Source: Prasinococcaceae sp. CCMP 1430
Lineage: Eukaryota > Plantae > Prasinodermophyta
Reading direction: 5' to 3'
Length of the DNA: 56,306 nucleotides
Assembly: GCA_013416795.1 (NCBI GenBank)
Contig: RQSC01001015.1
Span: 41,075 to 97,380, forward strand
Each line of letters opens with the position of its first letter. Positions within the stretch are counted from its first letter, which is position 1. A model generated the notes under the pieces. It was given only the letters and a program-made list of their open reading frames with translations. It ran no database searches and was not told where the DNA came from. Below, in pieces: positions 1 to 49,085 of this stretch. Made by a program: the position numbers and the translations under genes.

Positions 1-342
1 CGGCGGCGCTTCGCGCGCGGCGGCGGCAGCAGCTCGTGCGGGCTGCGCATGCCGCGCGCGCGTGCAGCAGCAGCAGGCAGCAGCGGCAGCGGCAGCAGCA
101 GCAGCAGCGGTGTGGCAAGCACCAATCACGCGCATGCGTGCTCGCCCAAGCGCACGCTGACACGCACGGAGGGCCACACGGTCACACGGTCACACGCGCA
201 CGCGCACGCGCCTGCGGGCGCTGTCGCCGGCCGGTTCGCGCGCCCGTTCGCACCCTGCGCGCTCGCGCCGAACGGGCGCGCCAGCGGCCGCGCGCGTGCC
301 CGAATTCGCGGCATCGAATTGGACACTTGGAATTACCTATGA

Positions 343-352: not shown

Positions 353-528
353 TCAATTAATATATTTTACGGATGAAAAGTGAAAGAACACTTCTCCGTG
401 AATTACCAGGAAGGTCTCTGGTCAGTCTACTGTACTGTAGCAACATAGTGTACATGCGCGGTCCGTCGAGCCCCCTGCCGAGCGAGCGCGGAGCGTCACA
501 GAGCGCGGGGCGGACGGGGCCACGGGCA

Positions 529-1649
529 CTACCTAGGTAGCCGGGCGCTCTCTTCGGCATTCTCGCCTCCGTCGCCGTACCCGTCCTCATCCGCGGGCGG
601 CTCGAGCAGCGCGCCAACAGCAAGTGCGGACCAGCCGCCCATCATGGCCAGGCCGCCGAACGGCGTCAGATACTGGAACGCGGAGGCACCTGAGAGCACG
701 TATGCCTGCGATCGCTCGCGACGGAAGAAGCACCGCGTGGTCGCGCTCGTCAGCATGCCGCTGCGCATCGGTCGGCGGGAGAGGTGTAGAGGCGCTCTTC
801 GCCGAGGCGCTTAGGCCGTGCGCACGAGGCGAATGGCGAGCTCCGCGCACGACGCAACGACTTGGGGAGCGTACGCACTGAGACGAGCTGGCGCGCGCAC
901 CTGAATTGACCACGAGAACATCGGCACGCCGGCGGTGAGCGCGCCGAGCGCCGTACGCTTCCGCGGAGTGCTTTCTGGTAGGGCTGCGACCGCGGCAATA
1001 GCGGCGGACGTCACCAGGGAATACTGCACGCCTATCTCCCAGATCTTCTGCCACCTCTCGAGGTCCGTGCGGCCGCGCGCCGATAGCATGCGCCGGAGGC
1101 CTGCACCAGCGCCCGCTCGTCAGTCGCCGCGAGGTGGGGGCATGGGTGAGCGGGGCAGCGAGCGAGCGCGACGCGCCTCCGCCGGCGAGGGCGCTGGACG
1201 CACCGTGGAAGCCGAACGCGCCCGATCCAACGCCTACGGCGCCCGCGAGGCCCGCGAAGCCCAGCGCGAGCCGCGTCGCGCGCGCATCGCTGACTGCTGC
1301 GCGTGACTCGGCCGCGTAGCACGCGCCCGCCGAGACGGCGGCGAAGGCCGCCGCGCCTGCGACCTGTGCGACTGGGCCCGCGCGTGACTGCGCGCAGCCG
1401 TTGTACGCGTCAACACGGAGGACGCGACGGAAGCGAGCAAGGGTGCGGCGGGTGTCAGACGCATCGCGCGCGCTCCCCCCCCCTCGCGCAGCTCGCTCGC
1501 GAGCCCCCCCACCCGCCTGCTCACCAGGCACCCGGCTGGCCCCTCACGCCCGCCCGCGCTCGCACCAGCATTCACGCGCCGGCCCGCCCGCGTGCGCGCG
1601 CGCGCGCACCATGAACTTGTTCGTCGCCGGGGCCGCCATCGCCCCTCCG
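529..1649 (-). CDS. TMEM256/DUF423-family small membrane protein, spliced, with N-terminal extension
   Basis: Spliced product reads GAFGFH-G-LRRML...WEIGVQYSL...GVPMFSWSIQ-AYVLSG...LTPFGGLAMMGGW. Introns 1101-1203 and 706-900 are GT-AG and in phase. Start ATG 1649 and the first intron's acceptor are less certain. Confidence 0.75.
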
Positions 1650-24873: not shown

Positions 24874-25429
24874 NNNNNNNNNNNNNNNNNNNNNNNNNNN
24901 NNNNNNNNNNNNNNNNNNNNNNNNNNNNNNNNNNNNNNNNNNNNNNNNNNNNNNNNNNNNNNNNNNNNNNNNNNNNNNNNNNNNNNNNNNNNNNNNNNNN
25001 NNNNNNNNNNNNNNNNNNNNNNNNNNNNNNNNNNNNNNNNNNNNNNNNNNNNNNNNNNNNNNNNNNNNNNNNNNNNNNNNNNNNNNNNNNNNNNNNNNNN
25101 NNNNNNNNNNNNNNNNNNNNNNNNNNNNNNNNNNNNNNNNNNNNNNNNNNNNNNNNNNNNNNNNNNNNNNNNNNNNNNNNNNNNNNNNNNNNNNNNNNNN
25201 NNNNNNNNNNNNNNNNNNNNNNNNNNNNNNNNNNNNNNNNNNNNNNNNNNNNNNNNNNNNNNNNNNNNNNNNNNNNNNNNNNNNNNNNNNNNNNNNNNNN
25301 NNNNNNNNNNNNNNNNNNNNNNNNNNNNNNNNNNNNNNNNNNNNNNNNNNNNNNNNNNNNNNNNNNNNNNNNNNNNNNNNNNNNNNNNNNNNNNNNNNNN
25401 NNNNNNNNNNNNNNNNNNNNNNNNNNNNN
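24874..25429. other. Assembly gap (N run)
   Basis: Run of N bases. Confidence 1.
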
Positions 25430-37110: not shown

Positions 37111-39276
37111 TCAGAGGGCGCTGACCGATGGGTGGGTGTCGTCGTCGTCGTCGTCGTCGAGGCCGAACTGCGTGGGCCCGTTGTCGACCATGTTGCCGTT
37201 GCGGTCGAGCGGCATGTACTGCGACATGATGGAGCGGATCTCGCCGTCCATCTCGCGGCGCAGCTTGAAGCGATAGAACGCGAAGCCCCCAGCGGCCGCG
37301 AGAAACACGCTGGCGCCCACGATTCCCACCACGCAGGCGAAGTCGGTGCCGCTGCCGCCGCCAGGGATGCGCACGCAGCTGCCCTCTTCGCCCGGGCTGA
37401 TGCCCTCGGGGCGGTAGTAGCCCTTCTTGCACCCGCACTTGAACGGGTTCTCCATCGTAATGGGGCCCGCGCGGCACTGGCAGTGCTTGCACGCGCAGGT
37501 GTCGCGGTTGTCGCACCTGTCGTGGCAGGTGACGCCGTCACCCTCGTAGCCCGCCGGGCACTCGCAGCGGTGCGTGGGCGGCGACGAGCCCACGCGGTCC
37601 ACGTCGTGGCACGTCATGTTGGCGTGGACGCCGTGCTCGGGGTCGGCGAAGCAGCCCTGGAAGCTCTGCGCGGCCGTGCAGTGCGCAGGCTCGAGCGTGC
37701 AGAAGGCTGGATTGAGCGGCCCGCCGGGCACGTTCTCGCACGCGCAGCGCGAGCACGAGCACATCTGCATGCTGGCGCACTCGTCCGCCGGATGACACGA
37801 TTGGCCGTCGCCCACGAAGTGCTCGGGGCACTCGCACGTGTACGAGTCGACCGTGTCCTTGCAAGCGCTGAAGTTGGCGACGCCAGGCACCTCGAGGTGC
37901 CAGCAGCCTCCGTGGTTGTTGCGGCACTCGTTAACTGCGCCCGCGCCGGCGCTCTCGCCGCCCTGCGAGCCCGTCGAGCAGATCTCGGGCGCCGCGCGGT
38001 CGGGGAAGCCCGCGCAGAGCGCGCGCAGCACCGCCGACTTGGTCAGCGATCCACGGTACTGCACATTGTTGAGCACCACCGTCGGTAGGATGGTCACGTC
38101 GCCGCGGCCGGTGGCCGGATCGCCCTCTTGCGCGGCCTGCTCGGCGTCGAGGATGGCGATTGGCGCGTCGTGCGCGGGGTGGCCCACGCAGTCGCGCGTG
38201 GCCTGCATGTCCCAGTCGGGCGACAGGTTTGACAGCACGCGCTCGGCGCACTCCTCGTCGTACGAGGAGTCCTCCATAGTGCACAGCACGCCGAACTGCG
38301 TGACGTACGACCACCACAACCAGGGCTCGCCGGTGGCGTTGGCCTGGCGGAAGACGCACAGCTGGCGCAGGTTCTCAGTCACCACATCCTTGCCTTCATA
38401 TCCGCTCCTCAGGTCGTCGTCGGGATCGGGCGCGCAGTAGCGCCCACCGCCGATGCACTCCGACATGCACTCCTCCGAGTCGCGGTACTCCTCGGGGCAG
38501 AACCACGTGATGTAGTGCGGCGTGAACTGCGTGTAGCCACCCTTCTCGAGCACCTTGGCGATGCCCGCGAACTCGCGAACGAAGGCCTTCTGCGCGTCGC
38601 ACTTCGCTCCGCACGCGTCGTTCGAGTTGCTCCAGAGTTCCCACTCGACGCGTGAGTCCGGGTGCGGCACGCTGTCGGTCCAGTCGAGCGTGAGCAGCAC
38701 GTCCTTGCCGTCGCGCAGCGCGTCCTTCATGGCGTCGCCGGTGGACTTGAGCACCAGCACGCTCGGCACGGTAATGTTCGCCGCCATGTGCGCCAAGTCC
38801 TGCGTGGGATCGCGCGGGTCGTCGTCGGGCGTGTCCATTGTCACGAGCGTGTCGCGCTCGACGTCGTCCGCCACGATGACCGCCATGGCGCCCGCTTGCT
38901 GCGCGTAGTACACCTTCTCGACGAAATAGCAGTCGCCGCGGTCGACAATGGCGATGCGCGCGAGGCCGGTGTGCGGCTCGGGAAACGTGTCGGCGCCGTA
39001 GTGGAACTTCTCGCACGCCCAAGGGCTGTCGGTCTCATGCCTGCTGTTGACGCCCGGGTAGAATGCCTGCCCACTCATCGAGCCCCCGTAGAACACGCTG
39101 CCGAAGTTGCCAATCGACGCGGCGTACGAGCCGCGGATGCCAACGGGGAAGTTGACGCGCAACGCATTTGTCTCGACGATGAAGTCCGCGGCCGCGGGGC
39201 TGGTGCAGAAGGCGGCGGCGAGAAGCGCCAGGGGCGCGGCCGCCAGGCAGGCCCGCGGCCACCCCCCGCGCGCCAT
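37111..39276 (-). CDS. VSR: Vacuolar sorting receptor (BP-80/VSR)
   Basis: Signal peptide; PA domain (IVDRGDCYFVEKVYYAQQAGA); DWTDSVPHPDSRVEWELW; TILPTVVLNNVQYRG; EGF-like repeats; TM; tail IRSIMSQYMPLD. Confidence 0.95.
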   Translation of the reverse strand: MARGGWPRACLAAAPLALLAAAFCTSPAAADFIVETNALRVNFPVGIRGSYAASIGNFGSVFYGGSMSGQAFYPGVNSRHETDSPWACEKFHYGADTFPEPHTGLARIAIVDRGDCYFVEKVYYAQQAGAMAVIVADDVERDTLVTMDTPDDDPRDPTQDLAHMAANITVPSVLVLKSTGDAMKDALRDGKDVLLTLDWTDSVPHPDSRVEWELWSNSNDACGAKCDAQKAFVREFAGIAKVLEKGGYTQFTPHYITWFCPEEYRDSEECMSECIGGGRYCAPDPDDDLRSGYEGKDVVTENLRQLCVFRQANATGEPWLWWSYVTQFGVLCTMEDSSYDEECAERVLSNLSPDWDMQATRDCVGHPAHDAPIAILDAEQAAQEGDPATGRGDVTILPTVVLNNVQYRGSLTKSAVLRALCAGFPDRAAPEICSTGSQGGESAGAGAVNECRNNHGGCWHLEVPGVANFSACKDTVDSYTCECPEHFVGDGQSCHPADECASMQMCSCSRCACENVPGGPLNPAFCTLEPAHCTAAQSFQGCFADPEHGVHANMTCHDVDRVGSSPPTHRCECPAGYEGDGVTCHDRCDNRDTCACKHCQCRAGPITMENPFKCGCKKGYYRPEGISPGEEGSCVRIPGGGSGTDFACVVGIVGASVFLAAAGGFAFYRFKLRREMDGEIRSIMSQYMPLDRNGNMVDNGPTQFGLDDDDDDDTHPSVSAL

Positions 39277-39647
39277 GGCGGCCGCGAGCTGCGAGACCAG
39301 CAGGAAGACGGCCGTCGAGCCCGCAGAGAGGGGGCCGGGGCGCCGCGCGCCGCGCGCGCGCGTGTGGCGCACAGCGCGCAGCAGGGGCGTGAGCACACGC
39401 CGCGCGCTTCTGAGCGCGTGAATCGTTTAAAAAAAAAAAAAAACAGGTGCGAGTTCCCCCTGGCTGGGGCCGGTGACGAGCGAGGACCTCGGGGGAATCT
39501 GGATCAGGTCATGATTTAATCAGGGGTCGGCAACATTCTAGACCTGGGTACCGAGTCGACAATCCGTTTTAGGACGAAGTGGGAGTCGTTGGTCGGTCTG
39601 GCGCCCGCCGTCGGCCGGGTGCCAGTCCTGTCGCCGCCTCGCGCGCC

Positions 39648-42600
39648 TCAAGGAGGCGAGATGGCTTGCTTGACGATGTCGAGCGCGCTGCGCGGCGGCC
39701 CTGCTCCCGGTGCTCGGGGGATCCAGCCCTTGGCCATCTCCTCGTTGTAGCGGTCCTCCATCTGCCGCGCCTCCCTCTCGGCGCCCGCGAGGAGCGCGGC
39801 CGACGCCGCCTCGCCCGCCTCGTCGACGCTCACCTCGACGCCCGGCGCGACGACATGCTGGCATTGCTGCGCTTGGAAGGCCTGCCAGGCCTCCTCTCCA
39901 ATGGCCCGGACGAAGTCCCGCCACGCGGCGGTTCGCAGGTGCTCCGACCGGTCGAGGTACTCCCACTCGTGGTCGGGCCAGCCCGCGTACTCGATGCACG
40001 CCTCAATGGCCGCGTCGCCCGACTCGTCCGTCCTCCAGCGCAGCGCCTTGAAGCGCTCGACATGGTACGGGTGGTACTCCTCCGCCTCGCTGCACGTCTG
40101 GAAAGGGTTCCTCTTGCTGGCGCGCCCAGAGTCTTCGCCGCGGTGCTGGGTGTTGTACGCAACCAGCATCTCTTCGTACGTCATGTGCCTCAGCTGGGGC
40201 CGCTCCTCGAGGTCCTTGGCGTCTGCCGGGTCGCGCCGCGGCACGTCCTGCTCGAGCTCCTCGGCGGGGTTGAAGGCCTCGCAGAACTCGGCGAAGTTTT
40301 GCAGCTCCTTTGAGACGCTCACGAGGCTGACGCGTGGGCGCACGTCGCCGCCAGTGCCCTCCGCCCACTTGGCCTTCTTTGCAGCGATCTTGGCGCGTTC
40401 GGCGAAGTCAGCGCCTGCCGTAGCGGCGGCGCCCGCGTCCGCGTAGGTGGCCACCGTGCCCGCGTGTGCTGTCATAACGGTGCGCGCGAGCGCCTTCGCC
40501 AGCTGCGGTGACACCGCGTTCCCCAGCTGCTTGTACTGCTCGTCGAGGGTGCCGATGAATTCAAAGTCGTCGGGAAAGCCTTGGATGCGCGCCTTTTCCC
40601 GCACACTCGCCACGCGGTGGTCCCAAGGCACCAGATTGATGTCCTTGTGAGGCCTGTGCTGCGAGTGTACGGTGCCGTGCTCCTGGTCGAGATCGTAACG
40701 GCCGTAGCATTCCGTGTCCCTGCCCATCTTCATTACCGCGCAAAAATAGGGGACCATTGGAAAGCGGTGCGACTGCAGCGTCCAGCCGTGCTTGAGCCTG
40801 GGCATGCGCCCGTCGAGCTCGTCGAACCTCTTGCGCTTCTCATCCCACATGTAGTTGGGAATCGAGTTGATCCACCGCGCCCCCATCTGCGCCCACTGCG
40901 CGTCGTTCAGGATCATCATCTTGGGACAATTCATTGTGCCGTCGTGGCCCATCATGTCGCGCCAGCACGCACCTCCCCGCAGCGGCACCGCCTGCACGCG
41001 CAGTCGGTTTGCCAGGCCCATGGGAGCCACCAAGTGTCCGGTGACCTTCCGTCCGGCCTCCATGTTCTGGCGCAGGTACGCCACGAACGGCGTGGGCGGC
41101 TTGCATTCGTAGCTCACGCCACTCTCGGAGGGGTCTAGGGCGTCCTTCACCTCCTCATCCGCGAGACGTGGAAGGTCGGGCGTGAAGGCATCGCCGATCA
41201 CCAGCGCCCGCGCGCGCAGCTTGGGGTGCGGCTGCGCCCGCCGAACGCTGTCCAGGTGCGCCGCTCTCCCGTTTGCTCTGAGCTTGCGCCTCACCACGGC
41301 CTCGCCCGCCAGATACTCCGTCTCGATGGCCTCCTTGGCCCTCTTCCACTCGAGCACACGCCTCTTGAGCAGCGATCCCGCGTCACGGCTGCGCAGGGCG
41401 CGGCCACAACCGCCAATGGGACCCGTCGGTCGGTCACCTCCGTTTGCCTGGGTCGGCTCCGGCCCGAGCGCCTCCAGCATCGCTGCCTTGCGCTCCGTTA
41501 GAGCCTCGAGCTCCTTGTCAGCCGTCTCCTGAGTGCATCGTTCGCCGGTGCCAGTAGCCACCTCCTCCTGAGGCAGCTCCTCCCGAACGATGCTGTCCAG
41601 GAAGTGCGCCCTGTTGCTCGCGCGCAAGGCATCCGAGATGGCGTCCTGATCCCACTTCAGGGAGCTCACCACGGGCTTGGGAGGCTCGGGTAAGTCTACT
41701 TGCCTGAGCGCGCCCAGCATGATGAGGCGGTTGCGCGACTGTGGCACGCCGTAGAGACCGGTCTTCGTCTGCTTCCTCCAGTCGTAGTTGTAGCCGTGGA
41801 TGGTGAGGGCATCGCCCAGGAAGTCCATCACATCCCCCTTGTCAGCCACATCTGGCACCTCCTCCATGACGAGGTACAACGGGCGATACAGCCACACCGC
41901 CTCCATGAAGCGCACGATGTTCCTGTTGTCGGGATCTGCGAGGACCTCCCCGACATCGTGGCTCAGGGTACGACGAAGGTTTGCACCAGTAAAGCCCTGA
42001 CAGGGCGGGCCGCCAGTGATGACATGGACGTCGCCAGGCATGGGCCACAAACCCGGGCTAAAGCCATCGCTGGCAACGAAGGCGCCTGCCTGTCGCTGCA
42101 GATCCAGGTCGCGCATCGCCTCGTCGCTCATCCACTTTTCCGCATCAGAGCCCTTTGTCTGCACGCACCACTCCACCCACCTGAGGGGAACGCCGCCCCT
42201 CGCCTCCTGAACGTTCACGTAGTCCATGAGCTGCCTTGACTGCGATCCCGTGCCCGAAGAGTTGCGCCAGCCCTTGGCGTTGGTCACGAGCACCTTCTCC
42301 GACGCGATCTCCTGGTTGATCCGCATGCCCACCACTGTGCGCTCGCTGCCTTCGCCCTCGCACTCGTCCTCATCGCTAGTGTCGACGGCAGCACGATAGT
42401 CCTTCAGCAGGTGCACGAAGCGCCGCGTCGTCGCCACGAAGCGCCCGACGCCCATCACGACGACATTGACGCTCGGATGATTGTGCTTGAAGGTCTTAGC
42501 GGGTACCTCTTCGATCTCAATCGCCGCCACGGTATCGATGCTCAGGTCGACAACGCGAGTGCCATTGACAGCATATTTGATGGAGCCGTCCATGTTCAAG

Positions 42601-43943
42601 CCGCCGCACCCTGCATACAGCTCGAGAACGCCCAGCCTTGTCACCTCGGCGACGTCCCACTGCGGCGGGTCGAGACACTCGCTCCACAGTGTAACGTCAG
42701 CGTTGGAGAAATTCGACTCCTCTTCGACTGCAGCGTCAACCACGCGCACGGGCCTCGACTGAATCTTGCGGCGTTTCTTCTTCTGCCCGAAGTCTTCATC
42801 TTCGTCATCATCGTCGAAGTCTGTGTCGTAGCACAGGTGTATGACGCTTCTGCGCTCACGCGCGGTGCGCCGCTTGCCCTCGGCATCAATGTACGTGCCG
42901 CCCTCATCGGCTCCGATCCCGCGCAGCCTCGCGTTTGACGCTTGCCGGGCGGCGAGCGCTGCAGCTTCAAGTGACTCCAGCTCGTCGAGAAACTCGTCGA
43001 GCAAGTCTTCGCAGCCGGTAAGGTTCGCGAGGGGCTCCCAGGTATTGTCCTCGTCGCCGTAGCCCTTCCACTTCACCAAAAATTTGGGTACGCCGTCCTC
43101 GCGCACCATCTTCCGGATGGCCTCCACCTCGTATTCGGGCTCGTCCCCGTCAGATCCGTAGGCTGCAGCTTCATTGGACCCAAGCTGGTCGAGAAACTCG
43201 TCGAGCAAGTCTTTGCAGCTCGTAAGGTTCTCCTCGGGCTCCCAGGTCTCCTCGTCGTAGCCCTTCCACTTCACCAAGAATTGTGCTGCGCCGTCCTCAC
43301 GCACCATCTTCCGGATGGCCTCCACCTCGTACTCGGGCTCGTCCCCGTCGGATCTGGAGGAAGTTAAGGACATAACGTCAATGACGTCATCCATGTCCTC
43401 GGAGGGTGCAGCGACTGGCCCCGGACAGCCAGCCTGCTCCGCCGCCAGCGCCATGAGGCTGCCGCGCTGCCAGCGCGGCCGGCCGCTGCCCCGCACGGCA
43501 GGCGCCGCGCGCGCGCGCCTGGACGCATCCTCGGGCGAGCTATTCTCGGCGCCCACTCCGACGCCGATGCCGCCTATGCGCTCGGGTGTCGGCGCCGCAG
43601 CTCCCGCGTAGCCGTCGGCGTAGCCCCCCCCGCCGCCCCCCCCCGCGCCCGCCAGCCGCTCGAAGCGCGCCGCGAGCTCGCGCTTGTGCGCCGGGCGCGC
43701 GTTCGAACGCGCCACGGCGTCGGCGAGCGGCCTGCCGAGGTGCACGTAGAGCTCCTCCAGGCACTCGGCGGCCGCCTCGCGCGGCGCGGGCTGGCCGTCG
43801 CCGAGCAGCTTCAGGAGCTCGGGCACGACGGCCTTCGCGGGCACGACGCCGTCGGCGGCGTTGCCCGCGCCGAAGGTTTCGGCGAGCGTGCGCACGAGCG
43901 TGGCGCACGCGGCGCGCACGCGCGGGTTCTTGTGCGTGAACAT
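39648..43943 (-). CDS. Chromomethylase-type C5 DNA methyltransferase with multiple chromodomains and an in-frame CLASP-like TOG fragment; possible starts 43943, 43454 or 43394
   Basis: Motif I LELYAGCGG; IV PMPGDVHVITGGPPCQG; VI MEEVP; VIII YGVPQSRNRL; IX-X SVREKARIQGFPD..YKQLGNAVS; chromodomains EYEVEAI..FLVKWKGY..TWEP twice. Single intronless ORF, open to 44432. Confidence 0.88.
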   Translation of the reverse strand: MFTHKNPRVRAACATLVRTLAETFGAGNAADGVVPAKAVVPELLKLLGDGQPAPREAAAECLEELYVHLGRPLADAVARSNARPAHKRELAARFERLAGAGGGGGGGYADGYAGAAAPTPERIGGIGVGVGAENSSPEDASRRARAAPAVRGSGRPRWQRGSLMALAAEQAGCPGPVAAPSEDMDDVIDVMSLTSSRSDGDEPEYEVEAIRKMVREDGAAQFLVKWKGYDEETWEPEENLTSCKDLLDEFLDQLGSNEAAAYGSDGDEPEYEVEAIRKMVREDGVPKFLVKWKGYGDEDNTWEPLANLTGCEDLLDEFLDELESLEAAALAARQASNARLRGIGADEGGTYIDAEGKRRTARERRSVIHLCYDTDFDDDDEDEDFGQKKKRRKIQSRPVRVVDAAVEEESNFSNADVTLWSECLDPPQWDVAEVTRLGVLELYAGCGGLNMDGSIKYAVNGTRVVDLSIDTVAAIEIEEVPAKTFKHNHPSVNVVVMGVGRFVATTRRFVHLLKDYRAAVDTSDEDECEGEGSERTVVGMRINQEIASEKVLVTNAKGWRNSSGTGSQSRQLMDYVNVQEARGGVPLRWVEWCVQTKGSDAEKWMSDEAMRDLDLQRQAGAFVASDGFSPGLWPMPGDVHVITGGPPCQGFTGANLRRTLSHDVGEVLADPDNRNIVRFMEAVWLYRPLYLVMEEVPDVADKGDVMDFLGDALTIHGYNYDWRKQTKTGLYGVPQSRNRLIMLGALRQVDLPEPPKPVVSSLKWDQDAISDALRASNRAHFLDSIVREELPQEEVATGTGERCTQETADKELEALTERKAAMLEALGPEPTQANGGDRPTGPIGGCGRALRSRDAGSLLKRRVLEWKRAKEAIETEYLAGEAVVRRKLRANGRAAHLDSVRRAQPHPKLRARALVIGDAFTPDLPRLADEEVKDALDPSESGVSYECKPPTPFVAYLRQNMEAGRKVTGHLVAPMGLANRLRVQAVPLRGGACWRDMMGHDGTMNCPKMMILNDAQWAQMGARWINSIPNYMWDEKRKRFDELDGRMPRLKHGWTLQSHRFPMVPYFCAVMKMGRDTECYGRYDLDQEHGTVHSQHRPHKDINLVPWDHRVASVREKARIQGFPDDFEFIGTLDEQYKQLGNAVSPQLAKALARTVMTAHAGTVATYADAGAAATAGADFAERAKIAAKKAKWAEGTGGDVRPRVSLVSVSKELQNFAEFCEAFNPAEELEQDVPRRDPADAKDLEERPQLRHMTYEEMLVAYNTQHRGEDSGRASKRNPFQTCSEAEEYHPYHVERFKALRWRTDESGDAAIEACIEYAGWPDHEWEYLDRSEHLRTAAWRDFVRAIGEEAWQAFQAQQCQHVVAPGVEVSVDEAGEAASAALLAGAEREARQMEDRYNEEMAKGWIPRAPGAGPPRSALDIVKQAISPP
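42970..43350 (-). repeat. Tandem duplication with 198-nt offset encoding two chromodomains
   Basis: GACGGGGACGAGCCCGA[G/A]TACGAGGTGGAGGCCATCCGGAAGATGGTGCG recurs 198 nt (66 codons) apart. Confidence 0.9.
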
Positions 43944-44435
43944 GTGGCGGCACGCGCGCTCGCACACCGCGGCCGCGCCGAGCTGCTCGGCGCACTCGCC
44001 GAGCACGGCGGCGGCGGCACCATCAGCAAGATCAGTGTTGTCGAGGACCTCAGGACCGCCAAGCGCAACGGCACGTAATCCCCCCCCCCCACACACACAC
44101 ACACACCGCCCTCGGCGGGTGCCGCGGGCGCTCGCGCTGTGGCGCGCCTCGCCCAGGCTGGCGCGCGTTCCCGCCAAATCTGGCAAATCTGCGCGCGCGC
44201 CGCGGCGTTCTCGCCGAACGAGGCAAATCTGCTTTCCAAACCCAAATCCGACACGCCAACGTGCGCGCCAGGCTGCAAATTCTGAACATGTATAGTGGGA
44301 TTCGATCAAATGGGGGGGGTACGTGTACTGGGGGGCGAGCGCTCCCAGGTGTCGCTGCATGCCGCGATGAGGAGGGGCCGCCCGGCCGCCGCGGTGCAGC
44401 CGACCCCGCGGCGGTCGCCATCTGCCTCCCACCCC

Positions 44436-46201
44436 TCACCGCTTGGCGACTTTGCTCGGGCCGCCGCCGTCCCCGCCCTTCCAGTGCCGCTTGCGCATGT
44501 TGATGAGCCAGTTGTCGACCTGGGTCTTGGTGAGGCCGCTCTTCTTGCACAGCGAGGCCTTCTGGCTGTCAGAAGGGTAGGGATTCTTCTGGTTGGCGTC
44601 CCAATAGGTCTTGAGCACGGCGGCGCTCTCCTCGGGCAGCTTGCCCTTGCGGCGCTTGACGGCGAACTGGGAGCGAGCGGGCGCATGCGCCGCTGGTCAG
44701 CTTGCGCGTGCACGCCCGAGCGCCCTGCGCGTCGCTTCGGATGGACGCATTCGCGAGGCATAAACGCGCAGCGCGTCGGTGCGAGGGGCAGGGCGCGCAA
44801 CTCACCCTGGCCTTCCATTCCAGCAGCTCCTTGCGGTAGTTGCGCTTGAGCTCTTCGCGGAACTGTGGCGTGTCCTTCAGAATTGCCAGATCAGGCGTCG
44901 CAGCGGCAGCGACGGTAGCCGTCCTCTTGGCGGCACCACCGGCAGCGACAGCGGCGGCCGCTACGACCTGCTCGTCCCGCGCCGACTGCAGCATGCCAGC
45001 GTCGCCCTCCGCGAGTGCGGCCAGCCTTGCGTCAAAACCCTTGAGCGCAGCTTCCTGCTGCTGGTAGAACTCTTGCACGTTGTGATGGTAGCGGCTAACG
45101 GCCGCCACCAGCCCGTTCATGAACTCGTCCAAGTCAGGGTCGCTACCGGCTCTTTGCAGAAGAGTTAGTGAGAAGGAATGGGGCAGGATGGGTGAGCGTT
45201 TGTGTGCGTGTGGGTACATTCACGCGCATGTGTCAGTGAATGCGTTTTGAAGAGCGGCAGGCGCGCGCTATCGCGTACCTCGTGGTTCCCACACCGCCGG
45301 CTGCGATAGCACGGTTGAGGAGTGCGTGGCGCAGTGCCTCGATGGTGCCATTGACGCCGACGCCCTCCACGCCAGCGCCTCCAGCTGCACCGCCAACGGA
45401 CGGAACTGACGGCGCCGACAGCGCGGCTATTGCCATGTTGAGCTCAACGAGCTTTGGCCACAGCTCGTGCGTGAGGATGGCGATGTCGAGCCCTTCATTG
45501 GCCTGGCCCGCAGGAAGAGCACCGGCAGCAGGCGCCTCTGAATGTCGCGTGGGAGCAACAACATGAATGAGAGCGAGTGCACGTGTCAGCGCGCGGGCAC
45601 GGCTTGGTACACGCATCGCGTCGCACGAACTCTGAGTCTGGTCGATGCAATCACTGCAGCACGTAGGCGCATACATACGCACGTACCTTCCATGGCCACA
45701 TGCGCTGCCATCAGGGGCGCGCTGTGGGGCGGTGCGCCGGCCAGAGGGGTGCCAAATGCTGCAGCTTGGTGAGCGACCGCATGCAGGTGCGCGTGTACCT
45801 GCGCACCATGTTGCGCGTGCGCTCCCGCACTAGGCTCACCGCCAACGGCTGCGTCGAGGCCATCCATCATCAGCAGGTCTTCTGTGAGAAATGCAATGCT
45901 GGGATCCATGCCTGGCGCGATGAGGCCTAAGCGCGTGCGCGTAAAAGCACGAGCGTGTCAACGCGAGCGAGAGTGCATGCTGACGCCCCGCTCCTCGTGA
46001 GCATGGTGATAGTCGGTGCGCATGAGCCAGTTCAAGCGCGCTCGCGTGCACGCGCGCGCGAATGTACACGCAGCGCATGCATGCACGCACGTGCGCGCTC
46101 CCACCTGCGCCGAACCCCACGGACGCGAGTGCAGCATCTTCCCCCGTCGTCGCCGCGTTGCTGTGTGGCGGCAGGTTGTCGCCCATGTGGGGCGGCGCCA
46201 T
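44436..46201 (-). CDS. KNOX-class TALE homeobox transcription factor, about six exons
   Basis: KNOX1-like AILTHELWPKLV; KNOX2-like DPDLDEFM; ELK-like EELKRNYRKELLEWK; homeodomain KRRKGKLP..LKTYW..NPYPSDSQK..WLINMRKRHWK. In-phase GT-AG introns link these blocks. Confidence 0.88.
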
Positions 46202-48900: not shown

Positions 48901-49085
48901 NNNNNNNNNNNNNNNNNNNNNNNNNNNNNNNNNNNNNNNNNNNNNNNNNNNNNNNNNNNNNNNNNNNNNNNNNNNNNNNNNNNNNNNNNNNNNNNNNNNN
49001 NNNNNNNNNNNNNNNNNNNNNNNNNNNNNNNNNNNNNNNNNNNNNNNNNNNNNNNNNNNNNNNNNNNNNNNNNNNNNNNNNNNNN
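48901..49085. other. Assembly gap (N run)
   Basis: Run of N bases. Confidence 1.

Follow-up and report, generated by a model that had tools for sequence, protein, structure and literature searches.

A gene on the 56,306-nucleotide stretch of Prasinococcaceae sp. CCMP 1430 DNA analysed here (the window; contig RQSC01001015.1, positions 41,075 to 97,380) raises the question of how a DNA methyltransferase that resembles the plant chromomethylases (CMTs) might read histone marks without a BAH domain, and whether it is a chromomethylase at all. The 1268-residue product is predicted, with moderate confidence, to be a functional nuclear C5 DNA methyltransferase of the DNMT1/CMT superfamily which represents a distinct, BAH-less family of the green lineage and works in a chromomethylase-like manner. 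It is proposed that methyl-lysine reading on histone tails would dock or activate the enzyme on marked nucleosomes, probably heterochromatic or repeat-associated ones, so that DNA methylation would follow the histone mark. The N-terminal chromodomain or chromodomains and a C-terminal chromo-type domain would supply the two reading surfaces for which CMT3/ZMET2 use a BAH and an internal chromodomain. Duplication of the N-terminal chromodomain would add a third potential reading site, and the internal module may persist as structural support for the catalytic domain. The coordinates of all features are collected in Table 1.

Pfam recognises DNA_methylase on the product as a split match (E 3.2e-28) and the catalytic motifs were located by string search. 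Motifs I, IV, VIII, IX and X are intact and the cysteine of the catalytic PCQ is present, in agreement with a preliminary description of the locus, made from the sequence alone, which had reported all main C5 methyltransferase motifs with their PPCQG. The best match among solved structures is maize ZMET2 at 161 bits, followed by DNMT1/MET1 at approximately 100 bits and DIM-2 at 50 bits, a ranking which supports the CMT-like reader-writer character proposed in that description. The gene is under purifying selection. The ratio of non-synonymous to synonymous substitution rates (omega) is 0.25 relative to a 99%-identical strain from Tara Oceans (13 synonymous and 11 non-synonymous differences), and relative to the closest relative it is 0.34 for the whole gene, 0.16 for the conserved catalytic blocks and 0.27 for the internal module.

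Two chromodomains lie ahead of motif I. Pfam Chromo (PF00385) matches two stretches with an E-value of 2.4e-29 (101.5 bits against a curated cut-off of 25.1), and in the alignment the Y/W/Y aromatic cage positions are kept in both, as had been anticipated. The two are direct repeats with a period of 198-204 nt and a DNA identity of 80-89%, and the copies differ by a synonymous divergence (dS) of 0.31 with an omega of 0.39. The closest relative, P0002, has a single N-terminal chromodomain which is equivalent to chromodomain 2; chromodomain 1 is an extra copy from the tandem duplication of one 66-68-codon unit. Both chromodomains are also found in the copies of the gene from wild populations represented by Tara Oceans contigs. 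The distance from chromodomain 2 to motif I is only approximately 110 residues, most of them low-complexity. No BAH domain is detected in the protein by Pfam, even at E<=1, which confirms the absence already noted from the sequence, nor does Pfam detect an RFD.

The segment between motifs I and IV had been described as chromo-like, degenerate and expanded by an insert, and hhalign, AlphaFold2 (AF2) and VIA-align together with the loss of the cage uphold this. Its layout is strand 1 (RTVVGMRI), a sub-insert of about 45 residues containing RQ..D, strand 2 (WVEWCVQ), strand 3 and a helix, and across the family it reads V.DMRI(N/D), a variable stretch, RQ..D..T, G..PL.WLEF.V, W..D, a helix and FPLPGDV. 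In hhalign the module runs in register with a chromodomain alignment from strand 2 through the helix (P 1.5e-4, probability 51%). AF2 applied to residues 366-472 predicts a strand (7-14), a partly disordered sub-insert, two further strands (62-68 and 74-78) and a helix (88-96); the predicted local distance difference test score (pLDDT) exceeds 90 in the latter two strands and in the helix. Foldseek returned weak and mixed matches; in a VIA-align search against 48,161 representative chains the top ~30 matches are nearly all chromo or chromoshadow domains (Z 5-6.2) and the ZMET2 chromodomain takes rank 35. No aromatic residue occupies any of the three cage positions in the family, where the residues vary from member to member. 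Motifs I and IV lie 195 residues apart in the family and 177 in CMT, whereas DNMT1 has only 75-97 residues here and the bacterial enzymes about 69, and the sequences that border the insertion align with those that border the chromodomain in ZMET2. This shared insertion of about 100 residues at the same site argues for kinship of the family with CMT. Judged from sequence and structural model, the internal module would most parsimoniously be a cage-less chromo-type remnant homologous to the CMT chromodomain.

A further domain of approximately 160 residues follows motif X in all members of the family and is found in no CMT or DNMT1. The segment aligns in register with a chromodomain profile in hhalign (P 1.8e-4). 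In the AF2 model of the domain (pLDDT 86.9), two lead-in helices precede three strands (45-55, 61-69 and 76-79), after which come additional helices and a long terminal one. The top 50 Foldseek matches of this model are all chromodomain-containing entries (E 0.02-0.15), and VIA-align superimposes the core on whole chromodomains, including that of ZMET2, with Z-scores of 5-6.7 and deviations of 1.5-3 Å over 55-58 residues. The cage positions of the core are Y1130, Y1156 and W1159 (in the domain model, residues 43, 69 and 72). An aromatic residue stands at each of the positions that match HP1 Y24, W45 and Y48 in 19 of 19 aligned family sequences (W/Y, Y/F and F/W). The preliminary description was right about the chromo-like fold after motif X; its treatment of this segment as one more degenerate piece does not agree with the invariably aromatic cage. 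On sequence and model, the C-terminal module is the family's most widely conserved candidate reader.

The family itself is small. An exhaustive HMMER search over 1.84 billion representatives found just 38 proteins at a cut-off of E<=1e-30, with about ten full-length clusters scoring 370-690 bits, and below these clusters the scores fall to about 147 bits, where the CMTs and DNMT1s start. Named members come from Prasinoderma coloniale, Pycnococcus provasolii / Pseudoscourfieldia marina, Mesostigma viride and the euglenid Eutreptiella braarudii. The euglenid sequence (P0235, in the cluster of P0007) would fit a transfer from the green alga from which the euglenid's plastid descends. The window protein matches the signature of the family, which consists of RQ..D and W.(E/x)(F/W) in the internal insert, EEV in motif VI and a C-terminal MTYEE...chromo-type...RY.EE..KGW domain. 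Scanning 14 relatives with Pfam revealed no BAH domain in any of them; the DNMT1-clade controls showed a BAH and the full-length controls also an RFD.

The internal remnant and the C-terminal module are present in all of the approximately 15 representatives of the family, and what varies is the N-terminus. P0002, P0003, P0006 and P0073 have one N-terminal chromodomain and the window gene has two. P0077, from a sequencing-run assembly, carries a PTM/DIR17-type Tudor domain (E 3.7e-16) at the place of the chromodomain of other members, and the family thus appears to swap its N-terminal reader. The remaining members have no N-terminal domain, some of these models being N-terminally truncated, and in about nine of the 15 scanned representatives the C-terminal module is the sole reader domain seen. 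Since chromodomain-bearing members occur on both sides of the basal split of the family, the N-terminal chromodomain is probably ancestral to it. The multivalent architecture, which the preliminary description did not recognise from described algal enzymes, is therefore only in part particular to this gene: the internal remnant and C-terminal module are family-wide, and the tandem duplication is specific to the window gene. No paper describing the joint N-terminal, internal and C-terminal chromo arrangement was found in the literature.

The relationship of the family to CMT and DNMT1 was addressed with a tree of catalytic domains drawn from the 150 closest representatives, with bacterial enzymes as the outgroup; owing to this sampling DIM-2, RID, DNMT3 and DNMT5 are not part of it. 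The tree contains a DNMT1/MET1 clade (support 100/99), a clade of the family and one long-branch relative (100/99) and a clade of CMT with a BAH-less pair and P0117 (89/88), and the order of the DNMT1/MET1, CMT and family clades forms an unresolved trichotomy. Both the DNMT1 clade (100/99) and the canonical CMT clade (99/96) exclude the window family. Taken strictly, the CMT membership suggested beforehand does not hold, as the catalytic domain groups outside the CMTs and in its own clade; by its catalytic sequence the window protein is CMT-like yet not a member of the CMT clade. The BAH-less pair, P0010 and P0125, which derive from sequencing-run assemblies, forms the basal branch among the canonical CMTs. 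Like the window family these two proteins lack a BAH and carry an insert of chromo type ahead of motif IV in which the loop between strands 1 and 2 is enlarged; unlike it, they group with canonical CMTs (99/96), their insert is still a Pfam-positive chromodomain and they have no C-terminal module. They may be an intermediate form between the CMTs and the window family.

These placements bear on two rival accounts of what the enzyme is. It could be a true chromomethylase, a CMT orthologue of unusual appearance which carries out CHG/CHH methylation under H3K9me2 control like CMT3 and CMT2. ZMET2 as the best solved relative, the chromo-type fold at the CMT insertion site, the position of the family next to CMT in the maximum-likelihood tree and the naming of the Mesostigma homologues as CMT/DMT in the genome paper (PMC6947507) would all fit. 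This is nevertheless quite unlikely, as no family member has a BAH and ZMET2 function needs BAH binding to H3K9me2 (Bewick 2017, PMC5410703), the internal module has no cage, and the family lies outside the CMT clade with a support of 61/40 for the sister relation. This unsettled sister relation also counts against the preferred reading of a separate, chromomethylase-like family, as does the probable retention of the insertion columns in the tree alignment, which may favour the grouping with CMT. The enzyme could alternatively be a maintenance CG methyltransferase of DNMT1/MET1 type which has lost its RFD and BAH and whose chromo modules are merely chromatin tethers. Forcing the family beside DNMT1 costs 2.2 log-likelihood units and is not rejected (approximately unbiased test, p-AU 0.156), methylation in P. 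coloniale lies mainly in the CG context (PMC11884799), and a 2025 survey names Prasinoderma among promising lineages with DNMT1 orthologues (PMC12344493). This alternative is unlikely when set against the absence of both RFD and BAH, the lower scores to DNMT1/MET1 than to ZMET2 among PDB structures and the motif I-IV insertion which the family has in common with CMT and not with DNMT1; furthermore, CG maintenance in P. coloniale could fall to a DNMT5 candidate (PMC11884799).

Two other accounts concern the working parts of the protein. The internal and C-terminal modules may be purely structural or serve protein-protein contacts in a chromoshadow-like manner, which would leave histone reading, if there is any, to the N-terminal chromodomains. 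This is possible though doubtful. In its favour, chromoshadow domains match the two modules as well as chromodomains do (Z within 1 for the C-terminal core), which would allow for a role in dimerisation or partner binding, the internal cage is lost, and the C-terminal core evolves faster than the rest of the protein (omega 0.63). The tie and the faster evolution of the core also weigh against the preferred reading, as do the results of sequence searches and the level of the structural scores: Pfam finds nothing in either isolated module at E<=0.1, hidden Markov model profiles of both yielded nothing useful against PDB sequences, and the Z-scores of 5-7 for the cryptic modules are middling in absolute terms. 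Against a merely structural role stand the C-terminal cage, which has stayed aromatic in all 19 sequences from very distant algae, and the representatives in which only this module is seen as a reader. Conservation of all three cage aromatics is not known to be usual in chromoshadow domains. It is very improbable that the gene is catalytically dead or decaying. Such a view could point to motif VI, which reads EEV in place of the near-universal ENV and is a difficulty for a functional enzyme, and to the long target-recognition region between motifs VIII and IX with its large low-complexity inserts. However, EEV is fixed in every member of the family, the catalytic cysteine and the other motifs are intact, the catalytic blocks have an omega of 0.16, and the 1268-codon reading frame is unbroken in several wild contigs.

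Among known systems, the predicted methyltransferase can be compared with the plant chromomethylases CMT3/ZMET2 and CMT2. It shares with them the DNMT1-superfamily catalytic domain and a motif IV of the form PLPGDV..I.GGPPCQG. As in these enzymes, the region between motifs I and IV is about 100 residues longer than in DNMT1, in this case through a predicted chromo-type fold at the corresponding site, and the logic of a histone reader coupled to a DNA writer is likely shared. Unlike them it has no BAH, an internal module that lacks the cage and contains the sub-insert, EEV in motif VI, extra N-terminal chromodomains, a cage-bearing domain after motif X and a separate catalytic clade. DNMT1/MET1 belong to the same superfamily and score about 100 bits as solved structures; the window protein is without their RFD, CXXC and BAH, and DNMT1 has neither the insertion between motifs I and IV nor the C-terminal domain. 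Cryptococcus DNMT5 combines its C5 methyltransferase with a chromodomain at the N-terminus. This enzyme, which includes SNF2, and diatom DNMT4 (RID/DNMT4) belong to unrelated catalytic families and have no internal or C-terminal chromo-type modules. DNMT4 likewise has an N-terminal chromodomain fused to its C5 methyltransferase (PMC9998398). Fungal DIM-2, also of the DNMT1 superfamily, depends for its targeting on the HP1 chromodomain which reads H3K9me3 (PDB 9baq). DIM-2 keeps a BAH and uses the HP1 chromodomain in trans, whereas the chromodomains of the window protein are in cis, and the similarity between the two is weak at 50 bits.

The suggestion in the preliminary description that histone reading 'moved' from the internal to the external modules is an evolutionary inference. 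A more far-reaching proposal, offered tentatively, is that the family is a chromomethylase sister or stem relic which predates the split of Prasinodermophyta, Chlorophyta and Streptophyta and sustains a reader-writer loop through terminal chromodomains, one of HP1 type at the N-terminus and a cryptic cage-bearing one at the C-terminus, in place of a BAH and the internal chromodomain, and that the Prasinoderma enzyme, its N-terminal domain being duplicated, is a trivalent reader and writes the non-CG part of the alga's 5-methylcytosine (5mC). By nanopore sequencing, 14% of all cytosines and 25% of CG sites in P. coloniale are 5mC, and PF00145 genes number five in this species, with three or more of them expressed, in addition to the DNMT5 candidate (PMC11884799). 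From the site counts of that study it is estimated here that approximately 2-6% of non-CG cytosines are called methylated, a value which is uncorrected for false positives. In current accounts chromomethylases arose once the divergence of green algae was under way, or in streptophytes; these accounts also hold that every DNMT1-type paralogue keeps a BAH (PMC5410703, PMC12344493), with CMT and DIM2 among those retaining it (PMC12344493); algal CMT-like sequences without the standard domains were left out by Bewick et al. 2017 (PMC5410703). If the proposal is true, a chromodomain entered the methyltransferase fold before the crown group of green plants arose. The family, which spans Prasinodermophyta, Chlorophyta and Streptophyta, shares the CMT-specific insertion and has dropped the BAH, and it would have rebuilt its reading surfaces from terminal chromo modules, one of which went unnoticed before because sequence profiles miss the C-terminal fold. 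Pfam-based surveys would under-count the reader domains of algal DNMTs. As a candidate that can be tested, the gene may connect histone marks with DNA methylation in a green lineage that branched early, and it would represent a natural experiment on the rewiring of histone reading and DNA methylation, in a marine green alga which is culturable and for which a nanopore methylome already exists.

The gene occupies the minus strand within a single long open reading frame (ORF) at 39648-44432. The gene proper comprises 1268 codons from the methionine at 43454 with zero internal stops, and it appears intronless because the coding region is stop-free and colinear with its relatives. An alternative methionine 20 codons downstream (MDDVIDVMS) aligns with the start of the closest relative, and the true start is one of these two. 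The GC content is about 68%. Several full-length ORFs of the same 1268-codon length and 99% identity to the window product occur on Tara Oceans metagenome contigs, and the public contigs that carry the gene are of metagenomic and not of transcriptomic origin. The EukProt model P0019 is 100% identical to the final 935 residues of the product; for P0019 and P0032, another EukProt model, no record as called genes was found. PRCOL_00004409 of Prasinoderma coloniale is the nearest named relative and has 99.4% identity to P0002; between P0002 and the window protein the identity is 68%. The flanking genes of P0002/PRCOL_00004409 differ from those of the window gene.

Table 1. Features of the methyltransferase gene, its product and its surroundings in the window.
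Feature	Protein residues	Window position	Strand	Sequence	Evidence
Coding sequence of 1268-aa methyltransferase		39651..43454	-		ORF list, 99%-identical homologues, alignments
Stop codon of methyltransferase gene		39648-39650	-		
Chromodomain 1, HP1/Polycomb type, Y/W/Y cage positions	41-88	43191..43334	-		Pfam, alignment, direct repeats
Chromodomain 2, cage positions present	107-156	42987..43136	-		Pfam, alignment
C5 DNA methyltransferase domain	263-1000	40455..42668	-		Pfam, PDB sequence matches, motif search
Motif I	277-285			LELYAGCGG	
Internal chromo-type module, directly before motif IV	366-472	42039..42359	-		hhalign, AF2, VIA-align, motif spacing
Motif IV (PPCQG)	473-487			PGDVHVITGGPPCQG	
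Motif VI	530-536	41847-41867	-	MEEVPDV	
Motif VIII	572-577			QSRNRL	
Motif IX	952-964			REKARIQGFPDDF	
Motif X	978-983			GNAVSP	
Family-specific C-terminal domain: helical lead-in (MTYEE...), chromo-type core, long terminal helix	1088-1250	39705..40193	-		
Chromo-type core of C-terminal domain	1125-1191	39882..40082	-		hhalign, AF2, Foldseek, VIA-align
CLASP/TOG-like HEAT fragment, 550 bp, in frame upstream of start codon		43519..44068	-		Sub-threshold Pfam match
Vacuolar sorting receptor gene, directly downstream		37111-39396	-		VSR_TRX E 8.6e-88, PA and EGF domains
KNOX/TALE homeobox gene, last exon, upstream		44436-44618	-		Homeobox_KN E 2.9e-17
Assembly gap (run of N)		24874-25429			
Assembly gap (run of N)		48901-49085			

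The TOG fragment within the long ORF is bordered by G-rich/GT and GC simple repeats. It was considered as an N-terminal extension of the enzyme and rejected, as a Tara contig (L001) that is otherwise 97.6-99.1% identical has 67 unrelated bases in place of these 550 and its long ORF is without a HEAT match. Because this contig lacks the bases in question, the fragment is read as a strain-specific, polymorphic insertion of a gene piece. The neighbours of the methyltransferase gene are ordinary host genes. The KNOX/TALE exon ends four bases before the long ORF and the same arrangement is seen in the Tara contig. An apparent low-GC block at 24-26 kb is caused by the first of the two runs of N.

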